Source: Macrostomum hystrix
Taxonomy: Eukaryota > Animalia > Platyhelminthes
DNA: 64,000 nt
NCBI GenBank assembly: GCA_950097015.1
Contig: CATNEN010000011.1
Location: 1,984,001-2,048,000, forward strand
Direction of reading: 5' to 3'
Shown here in pieces: positions 8,701-48,274 of the stretch. A program made the translations under genes and the position numbers. Numbering within the stretch: position 1 is the stretch's first letter; the number at the start of each line of letters is the position of its first letter. A model generated the notes under the pieces. It did not search any database, had not been told where the DNA came from, and saw nothing but the letters and a program-made list of their open reading frames with translations.

Positions 8701-11560
8701 TGTAGATGTAGGAATTCAACTGTTGATGTAGGAATTCAACTGTAGATGTAGGAATTCAACTGTAGATGTAGGAATTCAACTGCAGATCTGGGAACTCAAC
8801 TGTAGATGTAGGAATTCAACTGTAGATGTAGGAATTCAACTGTTGATGTAGGAATTCAACTGTAGATGTAGGAATTCAACTGTAGATGTAGGAATTCAAC
8901 TGTTGATGTAGGAATTCAACTGTAGATGTAGGAATTCAACTGTAGATGTAGGAACTCAACTGTAGATGTAGAAACTCAACTGTTGATGTAGGAACTCAAC
9001 TGTTAATGTAGGAATTTAACTGTTGATGTAGGAATTCAACTGTAGATGTAGGAATTCAACTGTAGATGTAGGAATTCAACTGTTGATGTAGGAACTCAAC
9101 TGTAGATGTAGAAACTCAACTGTTGATGTAGGAACTCAACTGTTAATGTAGGAATTTAACTGTTGATGTAGGAATTCAACTGTTAATGTAGGAATTTAAC
9201 TGTTGATGTAGGAATTCAACTGTAGATGTAGGAATTCAACTGTTGATGTAGGAATTTAACTGTTGATGTAGGAATTCAACTGTAGATGTAGGAACTCAAC
9301 TGTAGATGTAGAAACTCAACTGTAGATGTAGGAATTCAACTGTTAATGTAGGAATTTAACTGTTGATGTAGGAATTCAACTGTAGATGTAGGAATTCAAC
9401 TGTTGATGTAGGAATTCAACTGTAGATGTAGGAATTCAACTGTTGATGTAGGAATTCAACTGTTGATGTAGGAACTCAACTGTAGATGTAGAAACTCAAC
9501 TGTTGATGTAGGAACTCAACTGTTAATGTAGGAATTTAACTGTTGATGTAGGAATTCAACTGTAGATGTAGGAGTTCAACTGTAGATCTGGGAACTCAAC
9601 TGTAGATGTAGGAACTCAACTGTAGATGTAGGAATTCAACTGTAGATGTAGGAATTCAACTGTAGATGTAGGAATTCAACTGTAGATGTAGGAATTCAAC
9701 TGTAGATGTAGGAATTCAACTGTAGATGTAGGAATTCAACTGTAGATGTAGGAATTCAACTGTAGATGTAGGAATTCAACTGTTGATGTAGGAATTCAAC
9801 TGTTGGTGTAGGAATTCAACTGTTGATGTAGGAATTCAACTGTAGATGTAGGAATTCAACTGTAGATGTAGGAACTCAACTGTAGATGTAGGAATTCAAC
9901 TGTAGATGTAGGAACTCAACTGTAGATGTAGAAACTCAACTGTTGATGTAGGAATTCAACTGTAGATGTAGGAATTCAACTGTAGATGTAGGAATTCAAC
10001 TGTAGATGTAGGAACTCAACTGTAGATGTAGGAATTCAACTGTAGATGTAGGAATTCAACTGTAGATGTAGGAATTCAACTGTAGATGTAGGAATTCAAC
10101 TGTAGATGTAGGAACTCAACTGTAGATGTAGGAACTCAACTGTAGATGTAGGAATTCAACTGTTTATGTAGGAATTCAACTGTAGATGTAGGAATTCAAC
10201 TGTAGATGTAGGAATTCAACTGTTGATGTAGGAACTCAACTGTAGATGTAGAAACTCAACTGTTGATGTAGGAACTCAACTGTTAATGTAGGAATTTAAC
10301 TGTTGATGTAGGAATTCAACTGTAGATGTAGGAATTCAACTGTAGATGTAGGAATTCAACTGTTGATGTAGGAATTCAACTGTTGATGTAGGAATTCAAC
10401 TGTTGGTGTAGGAATTCAACTGTTGATGTAGGAATTCAACTGTTGGTGTAGGAATTCAACTGTTGATGTAGGAATTCAACTGTTGATGTAGGAATTCAAC
10501 TGTTGGTGTAGGAATTCAACTGTTGGTGTAGGAATTCAACTGTTGATGTAGGAATTCAACTGTAGATGTAGGAATTCAACTGTAGATGTAGGAACTCAAC
10601 TGTAGATGTAGGAATTCAACTGTTTATGTAGGAATTCAACTGTAGATGTAGGAATTCAACTGTAGATGTAGGAATTCAACTGTAGATGTAGGAATTCAAC
10701 TGTAGATGTAGGAACTCAACTGTAGATGTAGGAACTCAACTGTAGATGTAGGAACTCAACTGTAGATGTAGGAATTCAACTGTTTATGTAGGAATTCAAC
10801 TGTTGATGTAGGAATTCAACTGTAGATGTAGGAATTCAACTGTAGATGTAGGAACTCAACTGTAGATGTAGGAATTCAACTGTTTATGTAGGAATTCAAC
10901 TGTAGATGTAGGAATTCAACTGTAGATGTAGGAATTCAACTGTAGATGTAGGAATTCAACTGTAGATGTAGGAACTCAACTGTAGATGTAGGAACTCAAC
11001 TGTAGATGTAGGAATTCAACTGTAGATGTAGGAATTCAACTGTAGATGTAGGAATTCAACTGTAGATGTAGGAATTCAACTGTAGATGTAGGAATTCAAC
11101 TGTAGATGTAGGAATTCAACTGTAGATGTAGGAACTCAACTGTAGATGTAGGAACTCAACTGTAGATGTAGGAACTCAACTGTTGATGTAGGAATTCAAC
11201 TGTAGATGTAGGACCTCAACTGTAGATCTGGGAACTCAACTGTAGATCTGGAAAATCAACTGTAGATCTGGGAACTCAACTGTAGATCTGGGAAATCAAC
11301 TGTAGATGTAGGAATTCAACTGTAGATGTAGGAATTCAACTGTAGATGTAGGAACTCAACTGTAGATGTAGAAACTCAACTGTTGATGTAGGAATTTAAC
11401 TGTTGATGTAGGAATTCAACTGTAGATGTAGGAATTTAACTGTAGATGTAGGAATTCAACTGTAGATGTAGGAACTCAACTGCAGATCTGGGAACTCAAC
11501 TGTAGATCTGGGAACTCAACTGTAGATCTGGGAACTCAACTGTAGATCTGGGAACTCAAG
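2762..11560. repeat. 20-bp tandem satellite (TGTAGATGTAGGAATTCAAC)n, ~440 copies, with higher-order duplications
   Basis: Exact 20-bp period without indels; variants TGTTGA/TGTTAA, GGAACT/GAAACT, GATCTG; degenerates only at the right end. Confidence 0.99.
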
Positions 11561-11670
11561 TTTAGATCTTGGAGATCTAGAAAGAAGTCAAATTTAATAT
11601 CTAGAATCAAAATTATTTGTTCAATTTCTAATCGAAGTTTTAAATGGCACAACGAATTGGCTTTGCAGCG

Positions 11671-12507
11671 ATGAACCCCCTGACGCAGGTGCGAAATCAG
11701 CGCTTGTTGAATGAACGAGAGCTGAAGATGGGAACTGCCAATACCGGCTCCTCCTGGCACTCCATGTTCAAAGACTCGGCCTGGATCTACATCGGCGGCT
11801 TAGACTTCGACCTGACTGAGGGCGACGTCATCTGCGTGTTCTCCCAGTACGGCGAAGTTGTCAACATCAATCTGGTTCGAGATCAGGCCACCGGCAGAAG
11901 CAAGGGCTTCGCTTTCCTCTGCTACGAGGATCAGCGATCAACAGTTCTAGCCTGCGACAATCTGAATGGCGCCAAGGTTGTTGGCCGAACTCTCCGCGTC
12001 AACCATGTTGAAAGCTACAAAGTCAAGGAGCTGATCAAGCCGGACTTGGATCCCGTCAGGCAGCACCTCCGCGAGCAAGGCTGCGCGCCCGGTGCCGCCG
12101 CTGCTGTTGCTGAAGCCGTCTCGGTTGCCGCCGCGGTTGCCAAGGAAGCGGATTCGAGTCCGAAGCGATCTTCACAATCCCCACCGGCTTTGAATGCCAA
12201 AACTGACAGAATGCCCGTCAGGGTGAAACGCGAACGCATCGATCCCGGCTATCCTGACTATCGAAGTCGCCGTAGCCGTAGCCCTAATCAATCTGGAAAT
12301 CGGGCATTCGCTACTAGTTCAAATCGTCACCGAAGCCGTACCCGTAGCCGTAGCCCTAAGCGTACAGGAATACAACGAAGTCGTGATCAGGCCTCGCCGG
12401 CTAGACCTGTACATCGTAGCCGTAGCCGTAGCCGTAGTCCACGTGCCCACAGTAGCCGAAGTGATCATCGAGGCAGTGGAGGCGGCGGCCATCGTACTGT
12501 TCGATGA
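11671..12507 (+). CDS. RBMX2: RNA-binding motif protein X-linked 2 (IST3/Snu17, RES complex): RRM plus RS-rich tail, single coding exon
   Basis: MNPLTQVRNQRLLNERELKMG...SWHSMFKDSAWIYIGGLDFDLTEGDVICVFSQYGE...SKGFAFLCYEDQRSTVLACDNLNG; RSRSRS tail; an alternative in-frame ATG is at 11644. Confidence 0.95.
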   Translation: MNPLTQVRNQRLLNERELKMGTANTGSSWHSMFKDSAWIYIGGLDFDLTEGDVICVFSQYGEVVNINLVRDQATGRSKGFAFLCYEDQRSTVLACDNLNGAKVVGRTLRVNHVESYKVKELIKPDLDPVRQHLREQGCAPGAAAAVAEAVSVAAAVAKEADSSPKRSSQSPPALNAKTDRMPVRVKRERIDPGYPDYRSRRSRSPNQSGNRAFATSSNRHRSRTRSRSPKRTGIQRSRDQASPARPVHRSRSRSRSPRAHSSRSDHRGSGGGGHRTVR

Positions 12508-15266: not shown

Positions 15267-18200
15267 CTATAGCCGCAGATGCTCAGGCAGGCCTGGAACT
15301 TGACGACGCCAATTGCTCTTGTCGTCATTAGTCAGCTTGGCTACCGGGCGCAAGAACTCCTCAGTTTGTTTCCACTTTCTGGCCTTCCTTTCCACCTCCT
15401 GTTGGGTTGAGATGTTGCACAGTGCCATATGAATAGGAATCTTGGTTTTTACTGGGAGATTTCGAGAACATTGTGTCACAAATGGGAGATTTTCAGAAGA
15501 TTATCACAATGAGAGATTTAGAAAACATATTGTCACTATGGGAGTTTTTATAACAATGGGAGATTATAAGAACATAGGGCCACAATTGCGAGACAAATCT
15601 CTTGGAATATGAACTGAGTTTAGCTACCTGAGTCCCAGAACGTCGGAACGAAACATTCTCAACGGACAGCAGCGGAAAGTACAACTTGCCGTGGCGAACA
15701 ACTTTGGCCACTTTGATGCCGCAATTCTCGCACAACAGATCAACGCCAATCTGTTCCATGCCAGGCACCTTCTTGACCTCGCCGCCCTGCTGACCTCTCA
15801 GCCGACTGATGAACATGGTAGCATCCAAGACGATGCGGTGAATGTCTCCGATGAGTTTGAGTTTAGTTGAATGTGTCAGAAAATCCTGGCACTTGCCGCA
15901 CAGAATGTCGTGGTCACTGTCTGCTGGCCTGCCACCCCCGCCGACAGCTCCGTCGTCATCCTCACGATCGAGCAGATGAGCTTGATATTCAAGCATCTAA
16001 GGAAAATATGTTCCTTATTTTAAGATCCTCACACTAAATTCAAGATCACTAAATCCTCGTCCTAGAATCCTCATCCGGAATCTGAGATCCTAGAATCCCC
16101 TTCTGGAATCTGAGATCCCAGAATCCTCATCCGGAATCTGAGATCCTAGAATCCCCTTCTGGAATCTGAGATCCCAGAATCCTCATCCGGAATCTGAGAT
16201 CCCAGAATCCTCATCCGGAATCTGAGATCCCAGCTTACTCATCCGGAATCTGAGATCCTAGAATCCCCTTCTGGAATATGGGATCCTAGAATCCCCTTCT
16301 GGAATCTGAGATCCCAGAATCCTCATCCGGAATCTGAGATCCCAGCATCCTCATCCGGAATCTGAGATCCCAGCTTACTCATCCGGAATCTGAGATCCTA
16401 GAATCCCCTTCTGGAATATGGGATCCTAGAATCCTCATCCCGAACTGGAAATCCCATAATCCTTATTCCGAACTTGAGATCCCAAAATCCTCATACCGGA
16501 AACCTTATTCGGGATCTGGATCCCATTTCGGGCTAATAAAACAGCAGTACTCACTTTGACCTCCAAATCCTTCGGCTGCATTCCTGTAACATCCATCACA
16601 GCCCGCTTCATCATTTCGTCTCTCTGCTGATTGGTCCGCTCCTTCTCCCTTAGCCACTCCTGGGTTTCGGCCACGATCACGTGATATTCGCTGTCCTTGG
16701 CGCGACCCCTACCTTTGGACTGCACCATGGAGATTTCGTTGGTGAGGTGGCAGTAGCGAACCACCAAATTGCAGTCGGGAATGTCGAGGCCCTCCTCCGT
16801 GACGCTGGTGCAGGCGATCACATTGAAGCGGCCATCCTTGAAGTCCTTGAGTCTCGCCCGCTGTTCAGCGACGTTGGTGCCGCCAGCGGCCTCGCTGGAA
16901 GTGGCGCCTGTCACGTAGGTTGCGGCGAAAGACGAGTCTGGCATGGTCCCGGGCTCATTCAAATAATCGGCCAGCACCCTAGCGTAGAATTTCTGTTGCA
17001 CAAACACGATGGCCCGTGACTTGGTCCTGCCATTCTGGCCGGCTGGCCTGCAGAACTGCTTCTTCAAGATTTTCACGAGCTCTCCGAGTGGCGGACTCGA
17101 GTCCTGCGGGTTCGGATTGTCTCATCTAGCTCATCACCCGGTTCATCTCTCCCCTGTCCTGTCTTTCAACAGTCTATGTCTAATCTTTACTGTTTCTAGG
17201 GAGGTGAGTGATGAGACTGGGGAGAGATGAGACAGGGGAGAGATGAGATTCTGGAGGGATAAGACAGGGGAGAGATGAGACATGGGAGAGATGAGACTGG
17301 GGAGGGATAAGACAGGGGAGAGATGAGACAGGGGAGAGATGAGACTGGGGAGGGATAAGACAGGGGAGAGATGAGACTGGGGAGGGATGAGACTGGGGAG
17401 AGATGAGACAGGGGAGAGATGAGACTGGGAGGGATAAGACAGGGGAGAGATGAGACAGGGGAGAGATGAGACTGGGGAGGGATAAGACAGGGGAGAGATG
17501 AGACAGGGGAGAAATGAGACAGGGGAGAGATGAGACTGGGGAGGGATGAGACTGGGGAGAGATGAGACAGGGGAGAGATGAGACTGGGGAGGGATAAGAC
17601 AGGGGAGAGATGAGACAGGGGAGAGATGAGACAGGGGAGAGATGAGGCTGGGGAGAGATGAGACTGGGGAGGGATAAGACGGGAGAGATAAGACTGGGGA
17701 GAGATGAGACAGGGGAGAGATAAGACAGGGGAGAGATGAGACGGGAGAGATGAGACTGGGGAGAGATGAGACAGGGGAGAGATGAGAATGGGGAGGGATA
17801 AGACAGGGAAGAGATAAGACTGGGGACTCGTGGGGAGAGATGAGACAGGGGAGAGATAAGACTGGGGAGGGATGAGACAGGGGAGAGATGAGACTGGGAG
17901 GGATAAGACAGGGGAGAGATGAGACAGGGGAGAGATGAGACTGGGGAGGGATAAGACAGGGGAGAGATGAGACAGGGGAGAGATGAGACAGGGGAGAGAT
18001 GAGACTGGGGAGGGATGAGACTGGGGAGAGATGAGACAGGGGAGAGATGAGACTGGGGAGGGATAAGACAGGGGAGAGATGAGACAGGGGAGAGATGAGA
18101 CAGGGGAGAGATGAGGCTGGGGAGAGATGAGACTGGGGAGGGATAAGACGGGAGAGATAAGACTGGGGAGAGATGAGACAGGGGAGAGATAAGACAGGGG

Positions 18201-21200
18201 AGAGATGAGACGGGAGAGATGAGACTGGGGAGAGATGAGACAGGGGAGAGATGAGAATGGGGAGGGATAAGACAGGGAAGAGATAAGACTGGGGACTCGT
18301 GGGGAGAGATGAGACAGGGGAGAGATAAGACTGGGGAGGGATGAGACAGGGGAGAGATGAGACTGGGAGGGATAAGACAGGGGAGAGATGAGACAGGGGA
18401 GAGATGAGACTGGGGAGGGATAAGACAGGGGAGAGATGAGACAGGGGAGAGATGAGACAGGGGAGAGATGAGACTGGGGAGGGATGAGACTGGGGAGAGA
18501 TGAGACAGGGGAGAGATGAGCACAGGGTTCGTGGACCCTACATTAGCAGCTAGAATAGATACAAACAGTGTTTTAGTTTCTGCCTAAAACTAAAATACCC
18601 AATCCACAAGAATCCCTTGGGATAATTACACTTTCAAAGCCATCGAGTGCGCAATATTATAATGAATTACTTCTGCCTGGAACTGCGCACCAGCCTGCGC
18701 AGATCAATCCCATAATGTCTGAACCGATACCAATTAACAACTGCAACACTCACTTTGGCCTCGTTCGTGTCGCAATACGTAATCAGAGGCCCCATGAATT
18801 CATCCAAGCTCTCCCTCAGGATGTTCTCAGCTCTACTGGCTGGCTGTTTGGCTATCTCGTCCGGCGCCCTGAGCGCCTTCTCCAGGTAGTGCAGAGCATC
18901 AATTGAGCGAAAATACTGGCCAATCATAAGCGTCTCATTGTAGGTGCGCAGATAGCGACTGCAGGCCAATAGATTCTTTCTCGCGGACTCGTCAGCAACT
19001 TTGTGCACATTGTACTCAATGTCCGTGCAGAAATTGATGTAGTTGGGCACGCCTCTGGGCGGCGGCGACGCAGTCGGCAGGCCCTCGCCCTGGCCCTGCG
19101 GCAGGGCGTCGATGAAATCTCTCAGCAGTGCCTCGCCCCTGCGCATCAGTCCTTTAAGCAGTCGGGCGAATTTTTCCGAGCCCGGATTACCTGGCACAAT
19201 GTGAATCTCACAGTCCGGATTCGAGGTCACGAGGTCCAAGGATGCTTTGCAACGCTGAACAGTCACCGGATAGGGGCTGTCCAGGTTGGCGCACAGGCGG
19301 ATGAGGTGGTCGTTGGCCTGCTCTGGGCGGGACGCTCTGCCGGTGCCTTGACAGTGTTAAAGTGTTGTTTAAACGCGAACGCCATCTATAGGTACTGATT
19401 TTGTGCTGGTCCAATAACCCTGCACAAACTGGTCCAATAACCCTGCACAAACTGGTCCAATAACCCTGCACAAACTGGTCCAATAACCCTGCACAAACTG
19501 GTCCAATAAACCTGCACAAACTGGTCCAATAACCCTGCACAAACTGGTCCAATAAACCTGCACAAACTGGTCCAACAACCCTGCACAAACTGGTCCAACA
19601 ACCCTGCACAAACTGGTCCAACAACCCTGCACAAACTGGTCCAATAAACCTGCACAAACTGGTCCAACACCCCTGCACAAACTGGTCCAATAAACCTGCA
19701 CAAACTGGTCCAACAACCCTGCACAAACTGGTCCAACAACCCTGCACAAACTGGTCCAATAAACCTGCACAAACTGGTCCAACACCCCTGCACAAACTGG
19801 TCCAACAACCCTGCACAAACTGGTCCAACAACCCTGCACAAACGGGTCCAACAACCCTGCACAAACTGGTCCAATAAACCTGCACAAACTGGTCCAACAA
19901 CCCTGCACAAACGGGTCCAACAACCCTGCACAAACTGGTCCAATAAACCTGCACAAACTGGTCCAACAACCCTGCACAAACTGGTCCAATAACCCTGCAC
20001 AAACTGGTCCAACAACCCTGCACAAACTGGTCCAATAACCCTGCACAAACTGGTCCAATAACCCTGCACAAACTGGTCCAAAAAACCTGCACAAACTGGT
20101 CCAACAACCCTGCAAAAACTGGTCCAACAACCCTGCACAAACTGGTCCAATAAACCTGCACAAACTGGTCCAACAACCCTGCACAAACTGGTCCAATAAC
20201 CCTGCACAAACTGGTCCAACAACCCTGCACAAACTGGTCCAACAACCCTGCACAAACTGGTCCAACAACCCTGCACAAACTGGTCCAACAACCCTGCACA
20301 AACTGGTCCAACAACCCTGCACAAACTGGTCCAACAACCCTGCACAAACTGGTCCAACAACCCTGCACAAACTGGTCCAACAACCCTGCACAAACGGGTC
20401 CAACAACCCTGCACAAACTGGTCCAATAAACCTGCACAAACTGGTCCAACAACCCTGCACAAACTGGTCCAACAACCCTGCACAAACTGGTCCAACAACC
20501 CTGCACAAACTGGTCCAACAACCCTGCACAAACTGGTCCAACAACCCTGCACAAACTGGTCCAACAACCCTGCACAAACTGGTCCAACAACCCTGCACAA
20601 ACTGGTCCAATAACCCTGCACAAACTGGTCCAATAACCCTGCACAAACTGGTCCAAAAAACCTGCACAAACTGGTCCAATAACCCTGCACAAACTGGTCC
20701 AATAAACCTGCACAAACTGGTCCAACAACCCCGCACAAACTGGTCCAACAACCCTGCACAAACTGGTCCAACAACCCTGCACAAACTGGTCCAATAACCC
20801 TGCACAAACTGGTCCAACAACCCTGCACAAACTGGTCCAACAACCCTGCACAAACTGGTCCAACAACCCTGCACAAACTGGTCCAACAACCCTGCACAAA
20901 CGGGTCCAACAACCCTGCACAAACTGGTCCAACAACCCTGCACAAACTGGTCCAACAACCCTGCACAAACTGGTCCAACAACCCTGCACAAACTGGTCCA
21001 ACAACCCTGCACAAACTGGTCCAACAACCCTGCACAAACTGGTCCAACAACCCTGCACAAACTGGTCCAACAACCCTGCACAAACTGGTCCAACAACCCT
21101 GCACAAACTGGTCCAACAACCCTGCACAAACGGGTCCAACAACCCTGCACAAACTGGTCCAATAAACCTGCACAAACTGGTCCAACAACCCTGCACAAAC

Positions 21201-24200: not shown

Positions 24201-26536
24201 TAGCCATCGCAGGGGACCGGTGGCACAGGTAGCACAGGTAGCACAGGGAGAATGGATAGCCATCGAAGGGGACCGGTGGCACAGGTAGCACAGGTAACAC
24301 AGGGGGAATGGATAGCCATCGCAGTGGACTGGTGGCACAGGTAACACAGGGAGAATGGATAGCCATCGCAGGGGACCGGTGGCACAGGTAACACAGGTAG
24401 CACAGGGAGAATGGATAGCCATCGCAGGGAACCTTGTGGCACAGGTAACACAGGGAGAATGGATAGCCATCGCAGGGGACCGGTGGCACAGGTAACACAG
24501 GTAGCACAGGGAGAATGGATAGCCATCGCAGGGGACCGGTGGCACAGGTAAAACAGGTAACACAGGTAGCACAGGGAGAATGGATAGCCATCGCAGGGGA
24601 CCGGTGGCGCAGGTGGCACAGGTAACACAGGGAGAATGGATAGCCATCGCAGGGGACCGGTGGCGCAGGTGGCACAGGTAACACAGGGAGAATGGATAGC
24701 CATCGCAGGGGACCGGTGGCACAGGTAGCACAGGTAGCACAGGGAGAATGGATAGCCATCGCAGGGGACCGGTGGCACAGGTAGCACAGGTAGCACAGGG
24801 AGAATGGATAGCCATCGCAGGGGACCGGTGGCACAGGTAGCACAGGTAGCACAGGGAGAATGGATAGCCATCGAAGGGGACCGGTGGCACAGGTAGCACA
24901 GGTAGCACAGGGAGAATGGATAGCCATCGAAGGGGACTGGTGGCACAGGTAACACAGGTAGCACAGGGAGAATGGATAGCCATCGAAGGGGCCGGTGGCG
25001 CAGGTACTTCTTAACTGTTTGCATCGCCCTTGTTAGGCACGTTGAATTCGGCAAAGTCGGTTAAGGCCAGGCAGAATAATTCGTTACAGAGAGCCAACGG
25101 CAGCGCCTTCTCTGCCGCAAACTGCAGCCGGTGCAGCCGAGACAGGTCTCGCTGGCTGCTCAAATGCAGCAACTGCAGCACCTGCTCAGAATTCGGTGCA
25201 CCTGCGGGTGAGAATTGGCTCATTGTGCCTCTGCGAATCTGCAACGAAAAGGTTATAGATTAGGTCGCAGAGGAGTTAGATAGGGAGAGAATGAGAGGTA
25301 GACAGGGAGAGAATGAGAGGTAGACAGGGTGAAAATAAGAGGGAGACAGGGAGAGAATGAGAGGTAGACAGGGAGAGAATGAGAGGTAGACAGGGTGAAA
25401 ATAAGAGGGAGACAGGGAGAGAATGAGAGGTAGATAGGGAAAGAATGAGAGGTAGACAGGGAGAGAATGAGAGTTAGACAGGGAAAGAATGAGAAGGTAG
25501 ACAGGGAGAGAATGAGAGGGAGACAGGGAGAGAATGACAGGTAGAAAGGGAGAGAATGAGAGGTAGAAAGGGAGAGAATGAGAGGTAGACAGGGAGAGAA
25601 TGAGAGGTAGACAGGGTGAAAATAAGAGGGAGACAGGGAGAGAATGAGAGGTAGACAGGGAAAGAATGAGAAGGTAGACAGGGAGAGAATGAGAGGTAGA
25701 AAGGGAGAGAATGAGAGGTAGACAGGGAGAGAATGAGAGGTAGACAGGGAGAGAATGAGAGGTAGACAGGGTGAAAATAAGAGGGAGACAGGGAGAGAAT
25801 GAGAGGTAGATAGGGAAAGAATGAGAGGTAGACAGGGAAAGAATGAGAAGGTAGACAGGGAGAGAATGAGAGGTAGACAGGGAAAGAATGAGAAGGTAGA
25901 CAGGGAGAGAATGAGAGGTAGAAAGGGAGAGAATGAGAGGTAGACAGGGAGAGAATGAGAGGTAGACAGGGAAAGAATGAGAGGTAGACAGGGAGAGAAT
26001 GAGATATAGACAGGGACAGAACGACAAGTATTATTAAAGAATGAGAAGTAGATAGGGAGATAAAATAACAGCCAGACAAAGAGAAGATAGTGAGGTTAAG
26101 AGGTTAGACAATTGGAGAACACACTGAGACCATTCATAGGCATCACTTACACTCCCTGATGCAGTGGAGCAGCTGGCTGAATGCATTTTCAACTGGCATG
26201 TCGGCAGCAATGAGCAGCATCTCAGCCCAACTGCTGGGCCTCTTAATCGTGATTCCCTGCGTCTTATCGCCTTCGGGGCAGAAATTATTGCATGATAAAT
26301 TTGGGCATTTTAGTACTCTGAATATTTTACTATGCGAGAGAACTAGTCGGATGTGCTTGAAAAGTTTTAAAAGTACATAATACTATCAGATAGGGTTGAA
26401 GCTCACCATTTCGAATGGCTTCTTCAAACGCACCACTGAGTTTACTGAGGTCACACAGCTGATGCAACTCCAAGTCATCTAAGAAGAATTTCAACAGAAA
26501 GCTAAGGAAACTCTCCTCAGCTTCTTTTATGTCCAT
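15267..26536 (-). CDS. RIG-I-like receptor DExD/H helicase (RIG-I/MDA5/DRH family), ~10 exons, ~1000 aa. Exons: 26536-26407, ~26270-26151, ~25238-25016, 23302-23120, 22479-22136, 22053-21657, 19346-18754, 17103-16556, 15996-15628, 15398-15267
   Basis: Q motif LRDYQLELAEPALAGRN, APTGSGKT, DECH, TASPGTG...HLIRLCANLD, IVFVQQK, CTSVTEEGLDIPDCN, MVQSKGRGR; C-terminal domain with CGKC and CENC zinc pairs, YFPLLSVENVSF, RKWKQ; GT-AG phases are consistent from exon 3 onward, the exon 2/3 junction is unresolved. Confidence 0.93.
16045..16520. repeat. 28-bp minisatellite (AGAATCCTCATCCGGAATCTGAGATCCC) in an RLR intron
   Basis: Direct inspection; two alternating variants. Confidence 0.93.
17200..18520. 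repeat. ~16-bp GA-rich minisatellite (GGGGAGAGATGAGACA)n in an RLR intron
   Basis: Direct inspection; indels not multiples of 3. Confidence 0.96.
19405..21600. repeat. 23-bp minisatellite (CTGGTCCAACAACCCTGCACAAA)n, ~95 copies, in an RLR intron
   Basis: Direct inspection; explains the three 700-800 aa pseudo-ORFs. Confidence 0.98.
22620..23090. repeat. 19-22-bp pyrimidine-rich minisatellite (CCTTCACAACCTCCTTCTCTCC) in an RLR intron
   Basis: Direct inspection. Confidence 0.94.
23385..25003. repeat. Composite minisatellite (~47-56 bp: GGAGAATGGATAGCCATCGCAGGGGACCGGT plus a variable number of 9-bp GCACAGGTA subunits) in an RLR intron
   Basis: Direct inspection. Confidence 0.95.
25280..26015. 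repeat. ~22-bp purine-rich minisatellite (GAGAGAATGAGAGGTAGACAGG) in an RLR intron
   Basis: Direct inspection. Confidence 0.95.
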
Positions 26537-31228: not shown

Positions 31229-34200
31229 TCACACTCGCCTCATCAAACGGTCCGACTGTTGAGCTGGTGCCTGCGATATCTCCACAACCGAGAGCCCGGT
31301 CTCTCGCACCTGTCGTTTTCTCTGCTGCAGTCGCTTTCTGGCCGTCAAGCAGCGTTTTAATCCGGCGATAATTTCAGCAAAATGTCTGCGAAAACCTGCC
31401 TGGCACAGAAATTGAATCAGCGGGCGGCATGATAGCCAGGTGAGAATTAACAGCTGGCACACGGAGTCGATGTTGAAGAACAGGTCCTATTTTGGTGGAA
31501 AAAATCGAGGTGTTAAAAAATATTTTAAGCTATTACAAGAACAAATGAATCTGGAAGATCAATAATTATCGCAAACTCATTAGGACCATTCCTCAGTAGC
31601 AACAATGGAAATAGAATATTCAGAAAACTAACAATCAGTTCTGGTGATTTCTTATTTGCTCTGTCCTGGTGACTGATCAGCGCTTCGGCACTCAAGGCAG
31701 ACACAGCTTCATCCCCCATTCTCCCACCTCTCCAAATTTTCGTTTCATCTCTCCTCTCTTATCTTTTCCCTATCTGAAATTTCCCAGTCTTGAATTTCGC
31801 CTGACTAATCACTGGCCTGTCTTATATCTGTCAAATATTATCTCTCCCCTGTCTCATCCCTGTCGTATCTCATCTCTCCCCTGTCTCATCTCTCCCCTGT
31901 CTCATCCCTGTCGTATCTCATCTCTCTCCTGTCTCATCTCTCCCCTGTCTCATCCCTCCCCTGTCTCATCCCTGTCGTATCTCATCTCTCTCCTGTCTCA
32001 TCTCTCTCCTGTCTCATCTCTCCCCTGTCTCATCCCTGTCGTATCTCATCTCTCTCCTGTCTCATTTCTCCCCTGTCTCATCTCTCCCCTGTCTCATCTC
32101 TCCCCTGTCTCATCTCTCCCCTGTCTCATCTCTCCCCTGTCTCATCTCTCCCCTGTCTCATCTCTCCCCTGTCTCATCTCTCCTGTGTCTCATCTCTCCC
32201 CTGTATCATCTCTCCCCTGTCTCATCTCTCCTGTGTCTCATCTCTCCCCTGTCTCATCTCTCCCCTGTCTCATCTCTCCCCTGTCTCATCTCCCCCCTGT
32301 ATCATCTCTCCTGTGTCTCATCTCTCCCCTGTATCATCTCTCCTGTGTCTCATCTCTCCCCTGTCTCATCTGTGTCATTTCTCATATCTCTGGTGTTTTT
32401 CCAAAAAATCAAAGCTAATCCAGATGCACACCTGTCGGTTTTTTCTATCCAGAAAGTTGGCATGCGACTGAGTCCCTAGCAACGACCTCAAACTCTGCGG
32501 AACGAAGATGTGCTCCTGCATCATGTGGCTGGCGCTGTTGATGAACTTCACCAAGCTGAAAATCGAGCCTGGCATGCTGAACGGCAGTTCAAGCGCCACA
32601 GCGATCAAGCTAGCCCGCCTGATTTGGACGAAGCTGTCCGGATCCAGGTAGACGACGCGGCTGATGCTGTCCACGTCTAGCCACTGGCATTTGCCCTTGG
32701 CGCACAAGTGCAGCAGCCTGAAGCTGCAGTACATCGATGCCAGGCACGGCAGCAGGTCCCCGATAGTCAGGTCGATGAGTGGCCAAATGACAGCCCTGTA
32801 CCGGATTTCGACCCACTTGTCGGAGAAGCCGCAGTGATAGCCGCGATTAGTTTCGCCCGGATTGTCTAAGCGAGACAGAGAATAAGTCCACAGGAACTGA
32901 CAGTTGAGGCTGAGCAGCAAGGCGCAGAACAGGACAAAACAGTTGAACACTCGCTCCCTGTCGTACTTCGGGTAGAATCTGTCCAGGCGTTGGTACAGCT
33001 GCAGGGTATCCAACGCGATGGCCAGCAAGCAGAGCTGTCTCATGTGAGCTGCGAATGTGAAAACCATCGGATAGACCTGGCAGCAAGTCTCGCAAGCAAA
33101 CAGAAGCATGAAGTTGGCGTCGACACGGGCAACGGAACGAAGCCATAAATCACCGGCGCTGATCGAAATGAGCAGAGAGTCTAATGCAGCCACCGCGCTT
33201 GAGAAGTAGCACAACGGGAGGATCTTGCGGCCCATTCTGGCTAAAGTTAGTGAGGCCAGTAGGTTGCCAAGGCCGCCGAATAGCAGGAAGGCAGGCAGCG
33301 AGACTGCGAACAAAATGCGCCACCTATCCGGCAGGTCGGCCCTGCCACGGTACACCGTACAGTCTGGCAGCAGGCGGCGCTCTTCATCTTTCTGGTGAGT
33401 CTCAACTTCTGTCTTCGCGTTAACGTTGTGCACCGATGGCGCCAGATCCGGTCGCACCGCTTGCAGGATGCCACTGATTGCTGAGGCGTTGTCCAGTTTT
33501 ATCTTTGCACCGCCGCCGCCGCCGCGGGATGGTCGCTGAACATCAATTGATCCGAAGCCTTCAGAAACTGCGGCATGGGAAGCGTATTGGTATGGAGGAC
33601 TTTTAGTTACGAGGATAAATTAAAAAATATTTATAATTGTTTTGGTCCGCACTGTATTTAGGACAACTTTTCTCAACTCTTAAGATTGAAACAGAAGGAC
33701 AGCGAACGCACAGCAGACAAACGCTTTCAGACGAGCAAAGTAGAAGAAGAGCGTGTATGAAATCATCTTCAAATAGAAGACAACTTAGCAACTTTTCAGC
33801 TTGCTAAAGCCAGAGAATAATCAAACACCATTTTTTCTTGAAATCCACACCCGTTTCTGTCCTTTATTTAGCAAAACTCTTGTGTCCTTACTGTCCATAT
33901 TCTCGAAGAAGTCCGCTCCCAGACCCAGCTTTTTAAGATTCTCCTCTACTTTAGCGCCGCCCTTGAAGCTGTTGGTCTTGTCACCGGCGTGTGTGTCGAT
34001 CCAGTACAGGCAGGAGAAGCGGCTCATGCGGTTACTGCAGAAGCGAGTCACATCGTGATCAAAACAGCCGTGCCGCAGAATCTTGAAGATGCTGACATTG
34101 GGAAACTGGCGAGACCGGCCATCCACCTCCAGATCCGGCGGATAATTGGAGTGCTCCAAGTCCCAGCTGTTCGCGTCTCTGGCAGTTCTCGCCGGATTCT

Positions 34201-34291: not shown

Positions 34292-35194
34292 CGCGCTCGA
34301 GTCTAGACAACTCAAAAAATGTTGAAAGTTTACTGGGTCGAGCGGGGAGCCGATGCGAAGCAGATAGAGCTGTAAAAATGGCTCCAGGGGTTGTGCTGGC
34401 TGCGCTAGAAGGGAATAATATTGTCCCTGGGGCAGATTAAATTCTGGCGCATAAAAAGAGAGAGAGAGAGCACACAGGGCGCAAACCAAGCACTGGCTGG
34501 CTCTCCGCCTGGTATTTCCCCGTCTTGAGTCGAGGCTGATTCGTTCAACCCGGGGGGTAGAGGCGGCTTAGCCGAGTCAGACCGGATAACGCGCGGCGAC
34601 ATTAATTTCATTCTCCAAGTCTTATTAATAATTAATGCGCGTGCTTCTCCCCTTGGAAAGTTTTGCATTGAAAAAAGTGAGGAATAACGAAAACGTGTGT
34701 TTGCTTGTCATCTGCGTCTTGCAGATTTTTTGCTTTATGAATCTGAAGCGAGTTGCCATGCTGCCCGCGAATATGCTCTCCCGCTGATAAATCATTATAA
34801 TTTTCTGTCATGGGTTCAACAAATTTTATTGAAGCGGATATTGTTGCTCGGGTAACTTGTGAAAGAGCAGAGCCATTGATTCGCATAAAAAATCGATCCC
34901 AAGCTCTCACACTGAGCCAAGTAAGTTGACGCCGGGCAGACAGTTTTTATAAACAATTGATAATGACTTGAGTTTGCTACAATGTTCACTGAATTGCTAC
35001 AATGACTAACAGAAGGCCAAATAAAAAAACTGTTCTCATTTTTTGAAAGTTCACATTGAGCTTGAATGAAATTTCGATCCTATTTATGCTGTATTTTGGT
35101 GACTGGCAAATATTTTCTAATCTTAATTTAGCTTGCACAAACTTTACAGCGGGAACTAGCATCTAGCAATGTCAGAGTATCATCGGCTGCTCTG

Positions 35195-41740: not shown

Positions 41741-42225
41741 GAATAAATGGGATCGGAGTATTATAATTTCTAAAATCCCTATACAAGCGTAGGCTGGACC
41801 CATTCCGAGTCCTCAGCAGAATATCCGAAGCCTTGTGAAGTGGAATTTACTTTAATTTAACCAGTTTGAATAATTCCCTGACATTGATCGGTTCCTCAAA
41901 CTTAAATTTTCCTAGTCAAACCTATTGGACCCAGATCGCCATATTTGAAAATGTTTGCTATAAGACTTCAACCTACTTGAAAATGTTTCACTTCAATGAG
42001 AAAGAAGAGAAAATCGATCTTTCAAAAGCAGCTTGACGATTTCGGAGAATTCAATTCGAACTGTCACAATGCAATTGCCAGAGGTTGTCAACTCGTTTGC
42101 CCACGCATTCTTCAGTAAGGACAGATTTTTGTTTAACTTTTTCCTGTATATATACCATCGAGGCAAAAGATTTCTCGGACATTCAGTTTCTAGGTCCAAA
42201 GATTTCAGTCAAGACCAAAATCAAC

Positions 42226-44346
42226 ATGAAGCTGCTAAATCTAGTTGGCTTTCTGCTTTTCCTATCGTCAGTTTGCGGTAGGTAGTTCAGACAGTTATTA
42301 TCGATGCTTTTCCTTCTAGACTGTTTAAATTGAGTTCTGTCGTTTGTTTCAGATGAGTCCGATGGAAGAGCAGTTGGACAACCAGCTGCGGCACTTAAAA
42401 GCCTTCCTTTCGGAGGCCGAAACGGAGGAGGACCCGGCGGATTTGGTGGCAGAATCGGAGGAAGACCCGGTGGATTTGGCGGCAGAATCGCAGGAAGACC
42501 CGGCGGATTTGGTGGAAGAAACGGAGGATTTGCTGGAAGAAACGGAGGAGGACCCGGCGGATTTGGTGGTCCGTCTTTCGGCGGAAGAAGGAAAATTGGA
42601 TTAAGGAACAAAATCGGAGGAAGACCCGGCGGATTTGGTGGAAGACCCGGCGGATTTGGTGGAAGACCCGGCGGATTTGGTGGAAGAAACGGAGGATTTG
42701 GTGGAAGACCCGGCGGATTTGGTGGAAGACCCGGCGGATTTGGTGGAAGACCCGGCGGATTTGGTGGAAGAAACGGAGGATTTGCTGGAAGAAACGGAGG
42801 AGGACCCGGCAGATTTGGTGGTCCGTCTTTCGGCGGAAGAAGGAAAATTGGATTAAGGAACAAAATCGGAGGAAGACCCGGCGGATTTGGTGGAAGACCC
42901 GGCGGATTTGGTGGAAGACCCGGCGGATTTGGTGGAAGACCCGGCGGATTTGGTGGAAGAAACGGAGGATTTGGTGGAAGACCCGGCGGATTTGGTGGAA
43001 GACCCGGCGGATTTGGTGGAAGACCCGGCGGATTTGGTGGAAGAAACGGAGGATTTGCTGGAAGAAACGGAGGAGGACCCGGCAGATTTGGTGGTCCGTC
43101 TTTCGGCGGAAGAAGGAAAATTGGATTAAGGAACAAAATCGGAGGAAGACCCGGCGGATTTGGTGGAAGACCCGGCGGATTTGGTGGAAGACCCGGCGGA
43201 TTTGGTGGAAGACCCGGCGGATTTGGTGGAAGAAACGGAGGATTTGGTGGAAGACCCGGCGGATTTGGTGGAAGACCCGGCGGATTTGGTGGAAGACCCG
43301 GCGGATTTGGTGGAAGAAACGGAGGATTTGCTGGAAGAAACGGAGGAGGACCCGGCAGATTTGGTGGTCCGTCTTTCGGCGGAAGAAGGAAAATTGGATT
43401 AAGGAACAAAATCGGAGGAAGACCCGGCGGATTTGGTGGAAGACCCGGCGGATTTGGTGGAAGACCCGGCGGATTTGGTGGAAGACCCGGCGGGTTTTCT
43501 GGAAGAGGCGGAAGAGGACCCGGCGGATTTGCTGGAAGAAACGGCGGATTTGGTGGAAGACCCGGCGGATTTGGTGGAAGACCCGGCGGATTTGGTGGAA
43601 GACCCGGCGGATTTGGTGGAAGACCCGGCGGATTTGGTGGAAGACCCGGCGGGTTTTCTGGAAGAGGCGGAAGAGGACCCGGCGGATTTGCTGGAAGAAA
43701 CGGCGGATTTGGTGGAAGACCCGGCGGATTTGGTGGAAGACCCGGCGGATTTGGTGGAAGACCCGGCGGATTTGGTGGAAGACCCGGCGGATTTGGTGGA
43801 AGACCCGGCGGGTTTTCTGGAAGAGGCGGAAGAGGACCCGGCGGATTTGCTGGAAGAAACGGCGGATTTGGTGGAAGACCCGGCGGATTTGGTGGAAGAC
43901 CCGGCGGATTTGGTGGAAGACCCGGCGGATTTGGTGGAAGACCCGGCGGATTTGGTGGAAGACCCGGCGGGTTTTCTGGAAGAGGCGGAAGAGGACCCGG
44001 CGGATTTGCTGGAAGAAACGGCGGATTTGGTGGAAGACCCGGCGGATTTGGTGGAAGACCCGGCGGATTTGGTGGAAGACCCGGCGGATTTGGTGGAAGA
44101 CCCGGCGGATTTGGTGGAAGACCCGGCGGGTTTTCTGGAAGAGGCGGAAGAGGACCCGGCGGATTTGCTGGAAGAAACGGCGGATTTGGTGGAAGACCCG
44201 GCGGATTTGGTGGAAGACCCGGCGGATTTGGTGGAAGACCCGGCGGATTTGGTGGAAGACCCGGCGGATTTGCTGGAAGAAACGGAGGAGGATCCAACGG
44301 ATTCAGACACAAAAACTATGTTAGTCAACGCGCATTCAGTGGCTAA
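42226..44346 (+). CDS. Secreted Gly/Arg/Phe-rich repeat protein, 681 aa, (GGRPGGF)n. Exons: 42226-42277, 42353-44346
   Basis: Signal peptide [17 protein letters not shown], phase-1 intron GTAGGT...TTTCAG, 2-kb uninterrupted frame ending TAA; TATA-like sequence ~42147; AATAAA at 44436. Confidence 0.88.
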
Positions 44347-44559
44347 AACTGACCATTGATAAGTTATTTGGCTTTTCAAAAAGCGGAACTGAAATTATAT
44401 TTTACGGTTATCAGGGGGTTCTATCTAATATGAAAAATAAAAAAAGTATTTGAAACGTATTTCATAACAATTTCTAACTTTTTATGGCTTGTTTTGTTTC
44501 AGTCCAAAGTTTTCACAGAGAAGAGACATGTTGACATATTTGTCTTCCTTGGTAAGGAC

Positions 44560-46060
44560 AGTCACTCCGTAGATAGTTATATTTCTCACCGGAAGACAAT
44601 TTAGATTTTCACTCCGTAGATAGTTAGGATCGTCACTCCGTAGACAGTTAGGATCGCCACTCCGTAGACAGTTAGGATCGTCACTCCGTAGACAGTTAGG
44701 ATCGTCACTCCATAGACAGTTAGGATCGTCTAGATAGTTAGGATCGTCACTCCGTAGACAGTTAGGATCGTCTAGATAGTTAGGATCGTCACTCCGTAGA
44801 TAGTTAGGATCGTCACTCCGTAGACAGTTAGGATCGTCACTCCGTAGACAGTTAGGATCGTCACTCCGTAGACAGTTAGGATCGTCACTCCGTAGATAGT
44901 TAGGATCGTCACTCCGTAGACAGTTAGGATCGTCACTCCGTAGACAGTTAGGATCGTCACTCCGTTGACAGTTAGGATCGTCACTCCGTAGACAGTTAGG
45001 ATCGTCACTCCGTAGACAGTTAGGATCGTCACTCCGTAGACAGTTAGGATCGTCACTCCGTTGACAGTTAGGATCGTCACTCCGTAGACAGTTAGGATCG
45101 TCACTCCGTTGACAGTTAGGATCGTCACTCCGTAGACAGTTAGGATCGTCACTCCGTAGACAGTTAGGATCGTCACTCCGCAGACAGTTAGGATCGTCAC
45201 TCCGCAGACAGTTAGGATCGTCACTCCGCAGACAGTTAGGATCGTCACTCAATAGATTGTTACAATTGTCACTCCGAGGACAGTTACGATTGTCACTCCG
45301 AGGACAGTTACGATTGTCACTCCGAGGACAGTTAGGATTGTTACTCCGAAGATAGTTAGAACTGTCACTCAATAGATAGTTAGGATTGTCACTCAGTAGA
45401 AAATTACGATTGTCACTCCGAGGACAGTTACGATTGTCACTCCGAGGACAGATAAGATTAGTACTCCGAAGACAGTTACTATTGTCACTCCGAGGACAGT
45501 TACTATTGTCACTCCGAGGACAGTTACTATTGTCACTCCGAGGACAGTTACTAGTCACTCCGAGGACAGTTACTATTGTCACTCCGAGGACAGTTACTAT
45601 TGTCACTCCGAGGACAGTTACTATTGTCACTCCGAGGACAGTTACTATTGTCACTCCGAGGACAGTTACTATTGTCACTCCGAGGACAGTTACTATTGTC
45701 ACTCCGAGGACAGTTACTATTGTCACTCCGAGGACAGTTACTATTGTCACTCCGAGGACAGTTACTATTGTCACTCCGAGGACAGTTACTATTGTCACTC
45801 CGAGGACAGTTACTATTGTCACTCCGAGGACAGTTACTATTGTCACTCCGAGGACAGTTACTATTGTCACTCCGAGGACAGTTACTATTGTCACTCCGAG
45901 GACAGTTACTATTGTCACTCCGAGGACAGCTACTATTGTCACTCCGAGGACAGTTACTATTGTCACTCCGAGGACAGTTACTATTGTCACTCCGAGGACA
46001 GTTACTATTGTCACTCCGAGGACAGTTACTATTGTCACTCCGAGGACAGTATTTTCACTC
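44560..46060. repeat. 24-bp minisatellite with two variant domains (TCACTCCGTAGACAGTTAGGATCG on the left, TCACTCCGAGGACAGTTACTATTG on the right)
   Basis: Direct inspection; 2-nt deletion at ~45553; probably non-coding. Confidence 0.9.
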
Positions 46061-46594
46061 CGAAGACAGAAACACAGGGAGACTGAAGCATATTAGAGTA
46101 ATCACTCAAAATATAATTATAACTCTGCAAATTAATGCTCAACTTAGTTAAACAGACCGTACAGGTTTCTATAGAACAATAATTTCTAAGAGCAAAGGCG
46201 GTAGAAAACTTTTTCAGTTCCATAGGGACTTTTTCTAACCACAGACAAGTACCGAGAGTAGTCTAAAATATAATCGTATGTCTAAGATCTGACAGAACCA
46301 TTCTCACACCCTTAGTGGATGGCAGCTGGCTGATCGGTGACTTCTCCAGTGGCTCTTGAAAAAAAGACAGTTCCATGGACTAGCGAGTTTTTCTCTCGAG
46401 AAATAATGAGAAGGAACAGGAAAGTTCCAGTTAGGAACCAGTCAGATCTTCACGGCGGTGCCAAGTTGAAGCCTATTAAAGTTTGACTGCGGCAGAAAAT
46501 TATACTTGTTGATCATTGAAGAGCACTTCTCAGTCTCGGCACTTCGTTAAAGAAATTCATTGCGAATTGATAATTCTGCTGTCAATCAACAATC

Positions 46595-47423
46595 ATGAAA
46601 TTGCTGCATCTGGCCGTGATAATTCTACTGCTCTGCGTCTTCTTTGGTAAATTCAATTTGAAGCTTTGCTTCAGTGTCATTCGTCTTCTGTCTCACCCCG
46701 TCTATCTCTCTCCTAGCCTGTCTCAACTTTTCTCTCTTACCCTGTCGCCTTGTCTATCACATCTCAACCTGTCTATCTTATCTCACCCGGTCTGTCCACC
46801 TCTCTCTCTGTTTATCGATATTTCGACGTCGATCTCTCTTAACCCGCCAGTCTATCTCACCCTGTCTATCTCACCCTGTCTATCTCACCCAGTCTATCTC
46901 AACCTGTCTATCTCACCCTATCTATCTCACCCTGTCTATCTCAACCTGTCTATCTCAACCTGTCTGTCTCACCCTGTCTACCTCACCCTGTCTATCTCAC
47001 CCTGTCTATCTCACCCTGTCTATCTCACCCTGTCTACCTCACCCTGTCTATCTCACCCTATCTACTTCACCCTGTCTATCTCACCTTGTCTTTCTCACCC
47101 TGTCTCCTGTCTCCCCTATCCACCCCGCATTTCCAGGCGAATCCGCCGCAAAACGCAGAGGCGGCAGCTCCCATAGCCGCGGCAAGTCAAGGCCCCACCA
47201 GTCGAAATCATGGAGCTCCGGCAGCGTCGGCAAGTCCCACGGGTCCAGCCGAGGTTCATCAGGATCAGGAGGCAAGGCTCACCACTCGGGCAAGGCTCAC
47301 GGCAAGACAAACAAGCACTCAGGCTTGAGCAAGAGGCACAATAGGCAGAGGCACTCGAGTCATGGATCTGGCACCTACCACTGGGGCAGGAGGTATAGTC
47401 ACTACGGAAGACACAGCGGTTGA
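46595..47423 (+). CDS. Secreted His/Gly/Ser/Arg/Lys-rich cationic peptide precursor, 112 aa. Exons: 46595-46646, 47137-47423
   Basis: Signal MKLLHLAVIILLLCVFF, phase-1 intron GTAAAT...TTCCAG, then GESAAKRRGGSSHSRGKS...YSHYGRHSG*; AATAAA at 47492. Confidence 0.85.
46850..47105. repeat. 14-bp minisatellite (CTGTCTATCTCACC)n in the intron of the His-rich peptide gene
   Basis: Direct inspection. Confidence 0.93.
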
Positions 47424-48274
47424 AAATCCAAAATATTTGAATATTTGACTAGTCAAATAAGCATTGGTGATGAGTTACTTTCTCAATTCAAAATAAAACC
47501 GCTGAATGAGACTACTACAGAAGTAGTACGCAAAGAAAAATAATGGTGAAATAGTTTTGCTTCCTATCAAAAATAGATTTACACGTATTTCCGTATTTTT
47601 CATTTGATTTCATGAAGTTTTTCTCTTTTACGAGTTTGCAATCCAATTAAAACCCGCGTAGGTGGGGTGAGTTGCAGAGTGGTCTAACGCTGTTATGATT
47701 CGAAGGCAACCCGCTTATCACATTCCTACCGAGTTAAAAAGCAACATGGGTTTATTAGATTGCAATTTACTGAACAATTCACTTGTATGAACAGATTTGC
47801 AGCTTTGAGGCTTTGACAATTAGAAGTTTATTTTTTGTTCAGGTAGCAATCAGGGTTAAGAATGGGCCGTGGATGCGGCTGTACTTAAGATCATAAAATG
47901 GTGGTAGTGCTGGCTATGTGTGAGGTCACTAATAAACACAAGTATGTATATTAAGCGGAGGAAAAAATCTACGAGTTTTAATACGGTCACGCCGCCCACA
48001 TTTCTGATAGCTTTTGTATGCGTCAGCTTATCAGTGAAGAAAGTTGCAATAACAAGAGTACAATTCCGGCGAGCTTTCTAAAAAAGTAAATTTACAACAG
48101 GCATAAGCAAGACGCACAAAACACTGATAATTATGAGGAATTTAAAGCCTATTTAAACAGGTTCGACAAAGATCTTCTAAAACTAAGAACACAGTTGCTG
48201 GAATCTACAAGAGGAAAACTATTTGCTTTTAGAATTTGCGAAATACAATTTAAATTCGGACTAAATTTGAAGCA

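Follow-up and report, generated by a model that had tools for sequence, protein, structure and literature searches.

A 64,000-nucleotide stretch of the genome of the flatworm Macrostomum hystrix (assembly GCA_950097015.1, contig CATNEN010000011.1, positions 1,984,001 to 2,048,000), hereafter called the window, carries two neighbouring genes on the same strand, gene 1 and gene 2, each of which joins a short signal-peptide exon to a single further exon for a strongly basic, low-complexity product. The two form an orphan gene pair and not a demonstrated effector family. The reading favoured here, to which we give about an even chance, is that they are separate, adjacent, taxon-restricted genes for disordered secreted polycations, possibly old tandem duplicates, whose products may belong to a gland secretion. 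An initial annotation of the window had proposed a new family of secreted effectors, with a conserved signal exon and unrelated cationic payloads. What stood of this proposal is the presence of two cationic neighbours of the same architecture, each with a signal-peptide exon; what did not stand is the conserved leader and the existence of members beyond the pair.

Gene models and products

The two genes follow a common plan: a TATA-like box, a signal exon of 17 codons, a phase-1 intron and one exon for the whole mature protein (Table 1). As initially described, both coding first exons measure exactly 52 nt (17 codons plus a G) and are followed by a phase-1 GT..AG intron, and both ATGs have the heptamer AATCAAC upstream, although at different offsets (abutting the ATG in gene 1, 4 nt away from it in gene 2). 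After the intron, the reading frames, read and translated, continue with DESDGR in gene 1 vs. GESAAK in gene 2. The exon joint is confirmed by spliced contigs for gene 2 and predicted for gene 1. The two products share an unusual profile, being Cys-free, almost without acidic residues, predicted to be disordered and with an isoelectric point (pI) of about 12. Their payloads are unrelated in sequence and strongly cationic in composition, Gly/Arg/Phe repeats in gene 1 and a Ser/Gly/His/Arg/Lys mixture in gene 2, which agrees with the initial description.

Gene 2 is transcribed and spliced exactly as predicted, because contigs from three runs of one study join position 46645 to position 47136. 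This was found when public transcript runs were compared with positions 46400–47600 of the window: the contigs concerned, 416–507 nt long, begin at 46528, 46552 or 46590, run to 46645, skip 490 nt bounded by GT..AG, resume at 47136 and end between 47433 and 47548. Seven more rows, from two studies, contained 22–38% of the sampled words of this 1.2-kb stretch, which is approximately the share of the mRNA. The mature protein of gene 2 counts 95 amino acids (aa), of which Ser represents 25%, Gly 20%, His 14%, Arg 12% and Lys 9.5%, with 13 His, one Glu and no Cys. It has a KRR site after its first five residues, with GESAAKRR as a candidate pro-piece before 87 aa, and it contains loose GK(S/A)H repeats. 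Ser-Gly are the last two residues of both the gene 1 and the gene 2 proteins.

The model of gene 1 is a prediction, and its expression is presumed from the sequence. Its mature protein would count 664 aa, with 50% Gly, 14.8% Arg, 11.9% Phe and 9.9% Pro, one Tyr and only three acidic residues, all within positions 1–4; it would have about 90 heptads and a net charge of about +105. The DESDGR head is followed by four modules with a common 18-residue ending and then by five 53-aa modules, all of which are built from GGRPGGF heptads. Compared with a multi-copy neuropeptide precursor, in which dibasic sites flank every peptide copy, often together with a Gly for amidation, the first half of the protein has four GG-RRK spacers, whereas its second half, the five 53-aa modules, has none. 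Here the candidate pro-piece, DESDGR, is monobasic only and precedes 658 aa of repeat.

The 21-nt unit that encodes the heptad was sought in the whole genome (220,453,370 bases in 42 contigs), in which 68 copies with at most three mismatches were found, all at the gene 1 locus; elsewhere, there was one unrelated match. All 68 units keep one reading frame despite irregular spacers, and this frame is the one joined to the signal exon. Because all copies lie at one locus and in one frame, the array is a coding minisatellite that preserves the frame and is specific to this locus, as opposed to a dispersed satellite.

Gene 1 might nevertheless be non-functional, i.e. a period-21 minisatellite lying downstream of a signal-peptide-like open reading frame (ORF), with gene 2 as the only real gene. 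We consider this improbable. It would fit the roughly 20 minisatellite arrays of the window, the 43 units that are identical in DNA, and the fact that the array can be read without stops in other frames and on the antisense strand too. The differences among units amount to 35, 27 and 14 at the first, second and third codon positions; as they are not concentrated at third positions, they give no signal of selection either way. Set against this are the TATA box, an ATG in a signal-peptide context, a 75-nt GT..AG intron with a pyrimidine tract before its AG, an AATAAA 90 nt past the stop, non-repeat head and tail segments that are both in frame, and the confinement of a frame-keeping unit to this locus, next to an identically built neighbour proven to be expressed.

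Over the gene 1 array, the antisense strand carries an ORF of 709 aa with PPNPPGL repeats (window 42183–44312, minus strand), which mirrors the array, is open across the intron and exon 1 of gene 1 as well, and exceeds the sense ORF in length. A repeat unit free of stops is most likely all that lies behind it, which would make it an artefact.

Both leaders, read by eye, consist of M-K and a hydrophobic core of 11–13 residues and are candidate classical signal peptides. S-V-C/D fits the -3/-1 rule in gene 1, and the best fit in gene 2 is G-E-S/A (the stroke marking the cut); both products would be secreted. AlphaFold2, run without alignment, returned a mean predicted local distance difference test (pLDDT) of 59 for gene 1 and 50 for gene 2, with no secondary structure, which is compatible with disorder of both products.

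Homologues were searched for widely. Neither gene 1 (as a whole or by its first module) nor gene 2 had any among 5.8 billion clustered proteins; gene 2 had none among 1.84 billion representatives, read exhaustively; Pfam gave no domain in either product and the ESM Atlas no match for them. Matches to IF2, BamB and PF18914 in the protein library searches were rejected as bacterial low-complexity noise. In the genome itself, a six-frame search with both mature proteins returned their own loci and noise at E > 0.09, hence no paralogue. As far as searched, both genes thus appear to be single-copy orphans, a statement bounded by the length window of the word index and by the rapid evolution of such sequences. 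As a whole, the pair is classed as taxon-restricted genes for secreted low-complexity polycations.

Similarity between the two genes and search for further members

No single similarity between the two genes is significant. Their leaders are identical at 7 of 17 residues, K2, L3, L4 and L6 being among those common to both, and this number is within expectation when M-K is held fixed and residues 3–17 of one leader are shuffled (P = 0.12); as residue shuffling breaks the n/h/c layout of real signal peptides, such a null is generous to the claim of a conserved leader. In DNA, 26 of the 52 nt of exon 1 are identical (P = 0.13, codon shuffle). The first 12 residues after the leader, with the ES motif, did not exceed shuffles (P = 0.83), and neither did the N-terminal or the C-terminal end of gene 1, each set against gene 2, or the whole mature parts of the two proteins (P = 0.74–0.88). 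For an alignment of about 550 nt comprising the 5' flank, exon 1 and the start of the intron, 57 of 300 shuffles reached the observed score. The conservation of the signal exon, on which the initial annotation was built, is therefore not borne out.

The two 30-nt segments upstream of the ATGs share the 7-mer AATCAAC (P of about 0.05 for a shared 7-mer), and 4.5% of the ATGs in 184 kb share a 7-mer with gene 1. The idea of AATCAAC as a general start-site motif was rejected, the heptamer combined with ATGAAR giving 137 matches in the genome vs. 150 for the control.

Four patterns derived from the leaders were then run against the whole genome. The first (M-K-[LF]-[LF]-x-[LF], 24–42 nt, then G/GTA, the stroke here marking the splice) had 44 matches vs. 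61 in the reversed-pattern control, and its only open hydrophobic exons were those of the two genes. A look-alike at C30:436090 (MKFLLLLLTLLLLFLFF, 52 nt) was rejected as a TTA/TTATTA microsatellite without a gene. The second pattern (M-K-h-h-x4-h5, 7–25 nt, then G/GTA) had 11 matches, among which the genuine signal exons were those of the pair. Without the splice requirement, the same leader (third pattern) had 17 matches and none beyond the pair with the same architecture, the rest being rejected as (CTG)n poly-Leu leaders of other genes, a tandem repeat on contig C38 and junk. The fourth pattern (M-[KR]-h-h...h5, with the exon fixed at 52 nt and followed by G/GT) had 5 matches vs. 5 in the control, and only the pair had the full design. 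Poly-Leu matches beginning with MKLLLL (L026–L030, L034, L041 and L042) were likewise set aside as (CTG)n leaders of other genes or bare repeats, and in none of them was a 52-nt exon followed by an intron and a cationic low-complexity exon found. Finally, 184 kb with the window at their centre were scanned in a splice-aware way, which yielded no third gene with a signal exon and an acid-poor low-complexity exon. Together with the paralogue searches, these scans leave the pair alone, and the family proposed initially has no other member in this genome. What the initial annotation had expected if its family did not exist, namely no further members and leaders no more alike than random ones, is essentially what was found, with shuffles as the null.

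Two loci that surfaced in these scans deserve a description of their own. The tandem repeat at G000:C38:2844027-2844442 (minus strand), which came up only through its match to the leader pattern, has copies 54 or 108 nt apart, each starting with ATGAAGCTTCTGAGACTGCTC... (MKLLRLLRMLIML), and reads as a 252-aa repeat ORF. The second is a tandem pair of genes 13 kb apart, G000:C1:3203874 and G000:C1:3217114 (L026 and L027), with the thrombospondin-type-1-like motif WSQCSVSSC; the poly-Leu signal peptide, encoded by (CTG)n, is two Leu longer in one than in the other, an instance of a microsatellite that varies in length within a signal peptide.

Families with a conserved prepro region and hypervariable mature peptides are represented by frog skin peptide precursors, the conotoxin superfamilies and the arminins of Hydra. 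Like these, the pair consists of clustered genes in which a signal exon precedes a cationic payload that is unrelated in sequence from one gene to the other; unlike these, it has neither strong leader conservation nor an expansion to many members, both of which were tested. In true families of this kind, the leader is far better conserved than the 7 of 17 residues seen here.

It is accordingly improbable that the pair belongs to a family of antimicrobial, toxin or seminal effectors with a selectively conserved prepro exon. The identical length and phase of exon 1, the MKLLxL start, AATCAAC, the E-S followed by a basic residue after the intron and the cationic nature of both payloads all speak for such a family, as do the KRR eight residues into exon 2 of gene 2 and the Ser-Gly ends, a possible amidation signal. 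The leader and ES comparisons, the dissimilar flanks and the genome-wide limit of two members speak against it, and the product of gene 1 is a 664-aa repeat polymer and not a peptide.

At the other extreme, the two could be unrelated neighbours which gained generic Leu-rich signal exons independently, the 52 nt, the MKLL and AATCAAC being shared by chance; this is possible, though held at well below an even chance. Every sequence comparison made is within shuffle expectation or, for the 7-mer, at its border, and M-K with a Leu run is a common start, as the unrelated L026/L027 pair, which also begins with MKLLLL, illustrates. An excess of phase-1 introns around codon 20 is, in addition, the rule in animal genes for proteins with signal peptides (PMC1626468). 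Chance would nevertheless have to produce an unlikely conjunction of features, which we put roughly, as a judgement and not a computed value, at less than 1 in 100, and in the 220 Mb even the loose pattern turned up no further real exon.

A lesson for annotation is that MKLL, a 52-nt exon and a phase-1 intron are insufficient to define a family: taken alone, they are generic to animal secreted genes, and a species-wide null is needed before they are used.

Features of the pair and their surroundings

Table 1. Positions in the window of the features of gene 1, gene 2 and the interval between them
Feature	Position	Strand	Remarks
Gene 1, TATA-like box TATATATA	42147-42154	+	72-79 nt upstream of the ATG; from sequence and motif scan
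Gene 1, AATCAAC heptamer	42219-42225	+	directly against the ATG
Gene 1, exon 1, coding part	42226-42277	+	52 nt, 17 codons + G; ATG at 42226; predicted signal peptide
Gene 1, intron (predicted)	42278-42352	+	75 nt, phase 1, GTAGGT...TTTCAG
Gene 1, exon 2, coding part with stop	42353-44346	+	664 codons; head DESDGR; TAA at 44344-44346
Gene 1, AATAAA	44436-44441	+	90 nt past the stop
Intergenic 24-nt minisatellite	44561-46069		about 64 copies; between genes 1 and 2, outside both
Gene 2, TATTAAA, TATA-like	46474-46480	+	about 50 nt upstream of the most 5' contig end
Gene 2, 5' untranslated region, minimum extent	46528-46594	+	from transcript contigs
Gene 2, AATCAAC	46584-46590	+	in the 5' untranslated region, 4 nt upstream of the ATG
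Gene 2, exon 1, coding part	46595-46646	+	52 nt, MKLLHLAVIILLLCVFF + G; ATG at 46595; predicted signal peptide; within spliced contigs
Gene 2, intron	46647-47136	+	490 nt, phase 1, GT..AG (GTAAAT donor); joint seen in three runs
14-nt minisatellite	46850-47105		inside the gene 2 intron
Gene 2, exon 2, coding part with stop	47137-47423	+	95 codons; GESAAKRR head, ...GRHSG end; TGA at 47421-47423
Gene 2, 3' untranslated region	47424-47548	+	AATAAA at 47492-47497; longest contig stops at 47548

Minisatellites are a prominent component of the window, the arrays together making up a large share of it. The largest, of 8.8 kb (window 2762–11567), consists of about 440 copies of a 20-nt unit with 94% matches. 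The 24-nt minisatellite between the two genes comprises two sub-families, …CCGTAGACAGTTAGGATC and …CCGAGGACAGTTACTATT, and its ORFs of 158–518 aa, which occur in several frames, were rejected as repeat artefacts. Minisatellites of 14–22 nt with a GTCTC..CTCCCC(T) core, in either orientation, are found at 17202–18527, 25273–26021, 31840–32371 and 46850–47105, which suggests that one satellite family has seeded many sites of the window, including the intron of gene 2.

Concerning other potential genes, read from the sequence, a 550-aa ORF at window 186–1838 (plus strand) resembles the integrase portion of a retroelement pol gene, and an intronless 287-aa ORF at 11644–12507 (plus strand), directly after the 8.8-kb array, resembles an RRM-type RNA-binding protein whose tail is rich in Arg and Ser. 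On the minus strand, MRTVFLFGLLLVIVAI at 35039 resembles the start of a signal peptide and has a GT donor at +50 (phase 2); a minus-strand gene may have its first exon there, one unrelated to the pair. Conserved genes flank the pair on both sides, with a GPCR-like ORF at 37.6–38.7 kb and further genes past 48 kb.

Origin and possible roles of the pair

An old shared origin of the two genes is somewhat more probable than not, judging from the conjunction of their features: it is favoured because same-strand adjacency, exon length and phase, the two-exon plan, the residues K2, L3, L4 and L6 and a rare class of product coincide. The scaffold of signal exon and intron would have been duplicated locally, or re-used, a long time ago; exon 2 would later have been remodelled by repeat expansion, the architecture and a generic MKLL start being all that was left in common. 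A parallel is offered by the vertebrate SCPP locus, by the salivary histatin and statherin genes and by gains of exonic repeats in secreted proteins, in which the signal exon and the exon plan persist while disordered payloads diverge, His-rich cationic peptides being one outcome and exonic repeats creating new function (PMC10888740, PMC9417175). The likeness lies in tandem secreted genes which keep a signal-peptide exon and an exon plan while their mature parts have diverged; the difference is that homology is demonstrable in those genes, through flanks, leaders and many members and species, whereas here, with two genes in one genome, it is not.

As for function, both proteins would be exported from gland cells by means of their signal peptides and would act by bulk physical chemistry and not through a folded effector domain. 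Their Arg, Lys and His charges, together with Arg-Phe cation-pi stickers on a glycine spacer chain, could bind polyanionic glycans or surfaces, after which the material would condense into a gel, glue or mucus; the 13 His of gene 2 would add a charge sensitive to pH and metals. By analogy with known systems, a role as a bulk component of a gland secretion (glue, mucus or rhabdite matrix, cement) is favoured, and antimicrobial or reproductive roles are live alternatives.

The closest functional precedent, which is from the same genus, is Mlig-ap1, a secreted adhesive protein with more than 3,600 aa of Lys/Arg-rich (KR) regions whose role is electrostatic: heparin blocks attachment and free polycations block release (PMC6410801). 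Its KR regions correspond to the GRK-rich low complexity of PMC8621496. The pair resembles it in belonging to the same genus and in encoding secreted, extremely basic Gly/Arg/Lys low-complexity repeats without homologues outside the group. In Mlig-ap1, however, the polycationic regions lie on either side of a core made up of C-type lectin, vWD/C8/TIL, TSP1 and EGF domains, and the whole protein exceeds 5,000 aa, whereas genes 1 and 2 are small and stand alone, each with its own start, signal peptide and stop, with no Pfam domain and with other motifs (GGRPGGF in one, Ser/His-rich in the other). The pair is not ap1-like, because neither product has a domain core.

Gene 1 also calls to mind two glycine-rich materials. 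The tick cement protein GRP forms condensates by means of cation-pi contacts between Arg and Phe residues placed at intervals along a chain rich in glycine (10.1101/2023.03.27.534361). Both GRP and the gene 1 product have a signal peptide and a disordered glycine-rich chain with regular Phe and Arg, and GRP is adhesive and condenses by cation-pi and pi-pi contacts. There is, however, no homology, and GRP has 77 aa, 26% Gly and an acidic N-terminus vs. 664 aa, 50% Gly and a strict periodicity in gene 1. Abductin, the elastomer of the scallop hinge, with the repeat GGFGGMGGGX and about 58% Gly, is a random-coil extracellular material (PMC9999432). It shares with gene 1 a signal peptide, a Gly-dominated repeat (58% vs. 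50% Gly) and the GGFGG motif, but it is a protein of 116 aa with much Met, almost no Pro and little charge, whereas gene 1 has Arg-Pro in every heptad and a charge of about +105. The clustered-protein searches gave no significant animal match for gene 1, and the analogy is one of composition only.

A role in host defence is rather unlikely. Gene 2 would then encode a histatin-like, His-rich antimicrobial or metal-binding peptide freed at KRR, and gene 1 a polyprotein from which cleavage at the four RRK sites would release cationic peptides rich in glycine. The composition and charge of both products, the KRR near the N-terminus of gene 2 and the four RRK spacers of 11 residues in gene 1 are in favour of it, and other animals do have cationic antimicrobial peptides rich in glycine or in histidine. 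No dibasic site occurs, however, in the five 53-aa modules that form the second half of gene 1, and Arg-Pro bonds, which dominate in gene 1, are poor substrates for convertases. Moreover, no amphipathic helix or other secondary structure is predicted in either payload, and the protein searches returned no relatives among known families.

Several observations weigh against the favoured reading of an orphan pair of secreted polycations with a common past. Leaders, flanks and mature parts are all within shuffle expectation, so that the sequence does not show a common origin, and having a phase-1 intron close to codon 20 is a generic trait of genes for secreted proteins (PMC1626468). The rarity of the scan patterns is partly circular, as they were built from the pair itself. 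Gene 1 sits among non-coding minisatellites, and its repeat opens several other frames too. Lastly, AlphaFold2 run on a single sequence is a weak test of disorder.

A further, unlikely, proposal concerns how such genes begin: new secreted proteins would be born when a local duplication copies a signal exon, phase-1 donor included, and the copy comes to be spliced to whatever open, codon-periodic repeat lies downstream. The payload of gene 1 may then be its locus-specific 21-nt minisatellite, and that of gene 2 an older, degenerated one. If this were true, the pair would have been caught in the act, and it would provide M. hystrix with lineage-specific polycationic components of its secretions.

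Under the favoured reading of the two genes as suppliers of a gland secretion, the consequences depend on where they are expressed. Should the pair prove gland-specific, gene 1 would be a very pure natural sticker-spacer polymer of Arg, Phe and Gly, relevant to coacervate adhesives and bio-elastomers, and stand-alone polycations would join the charge-based model of attachment and release in Macrostomum adhesion.

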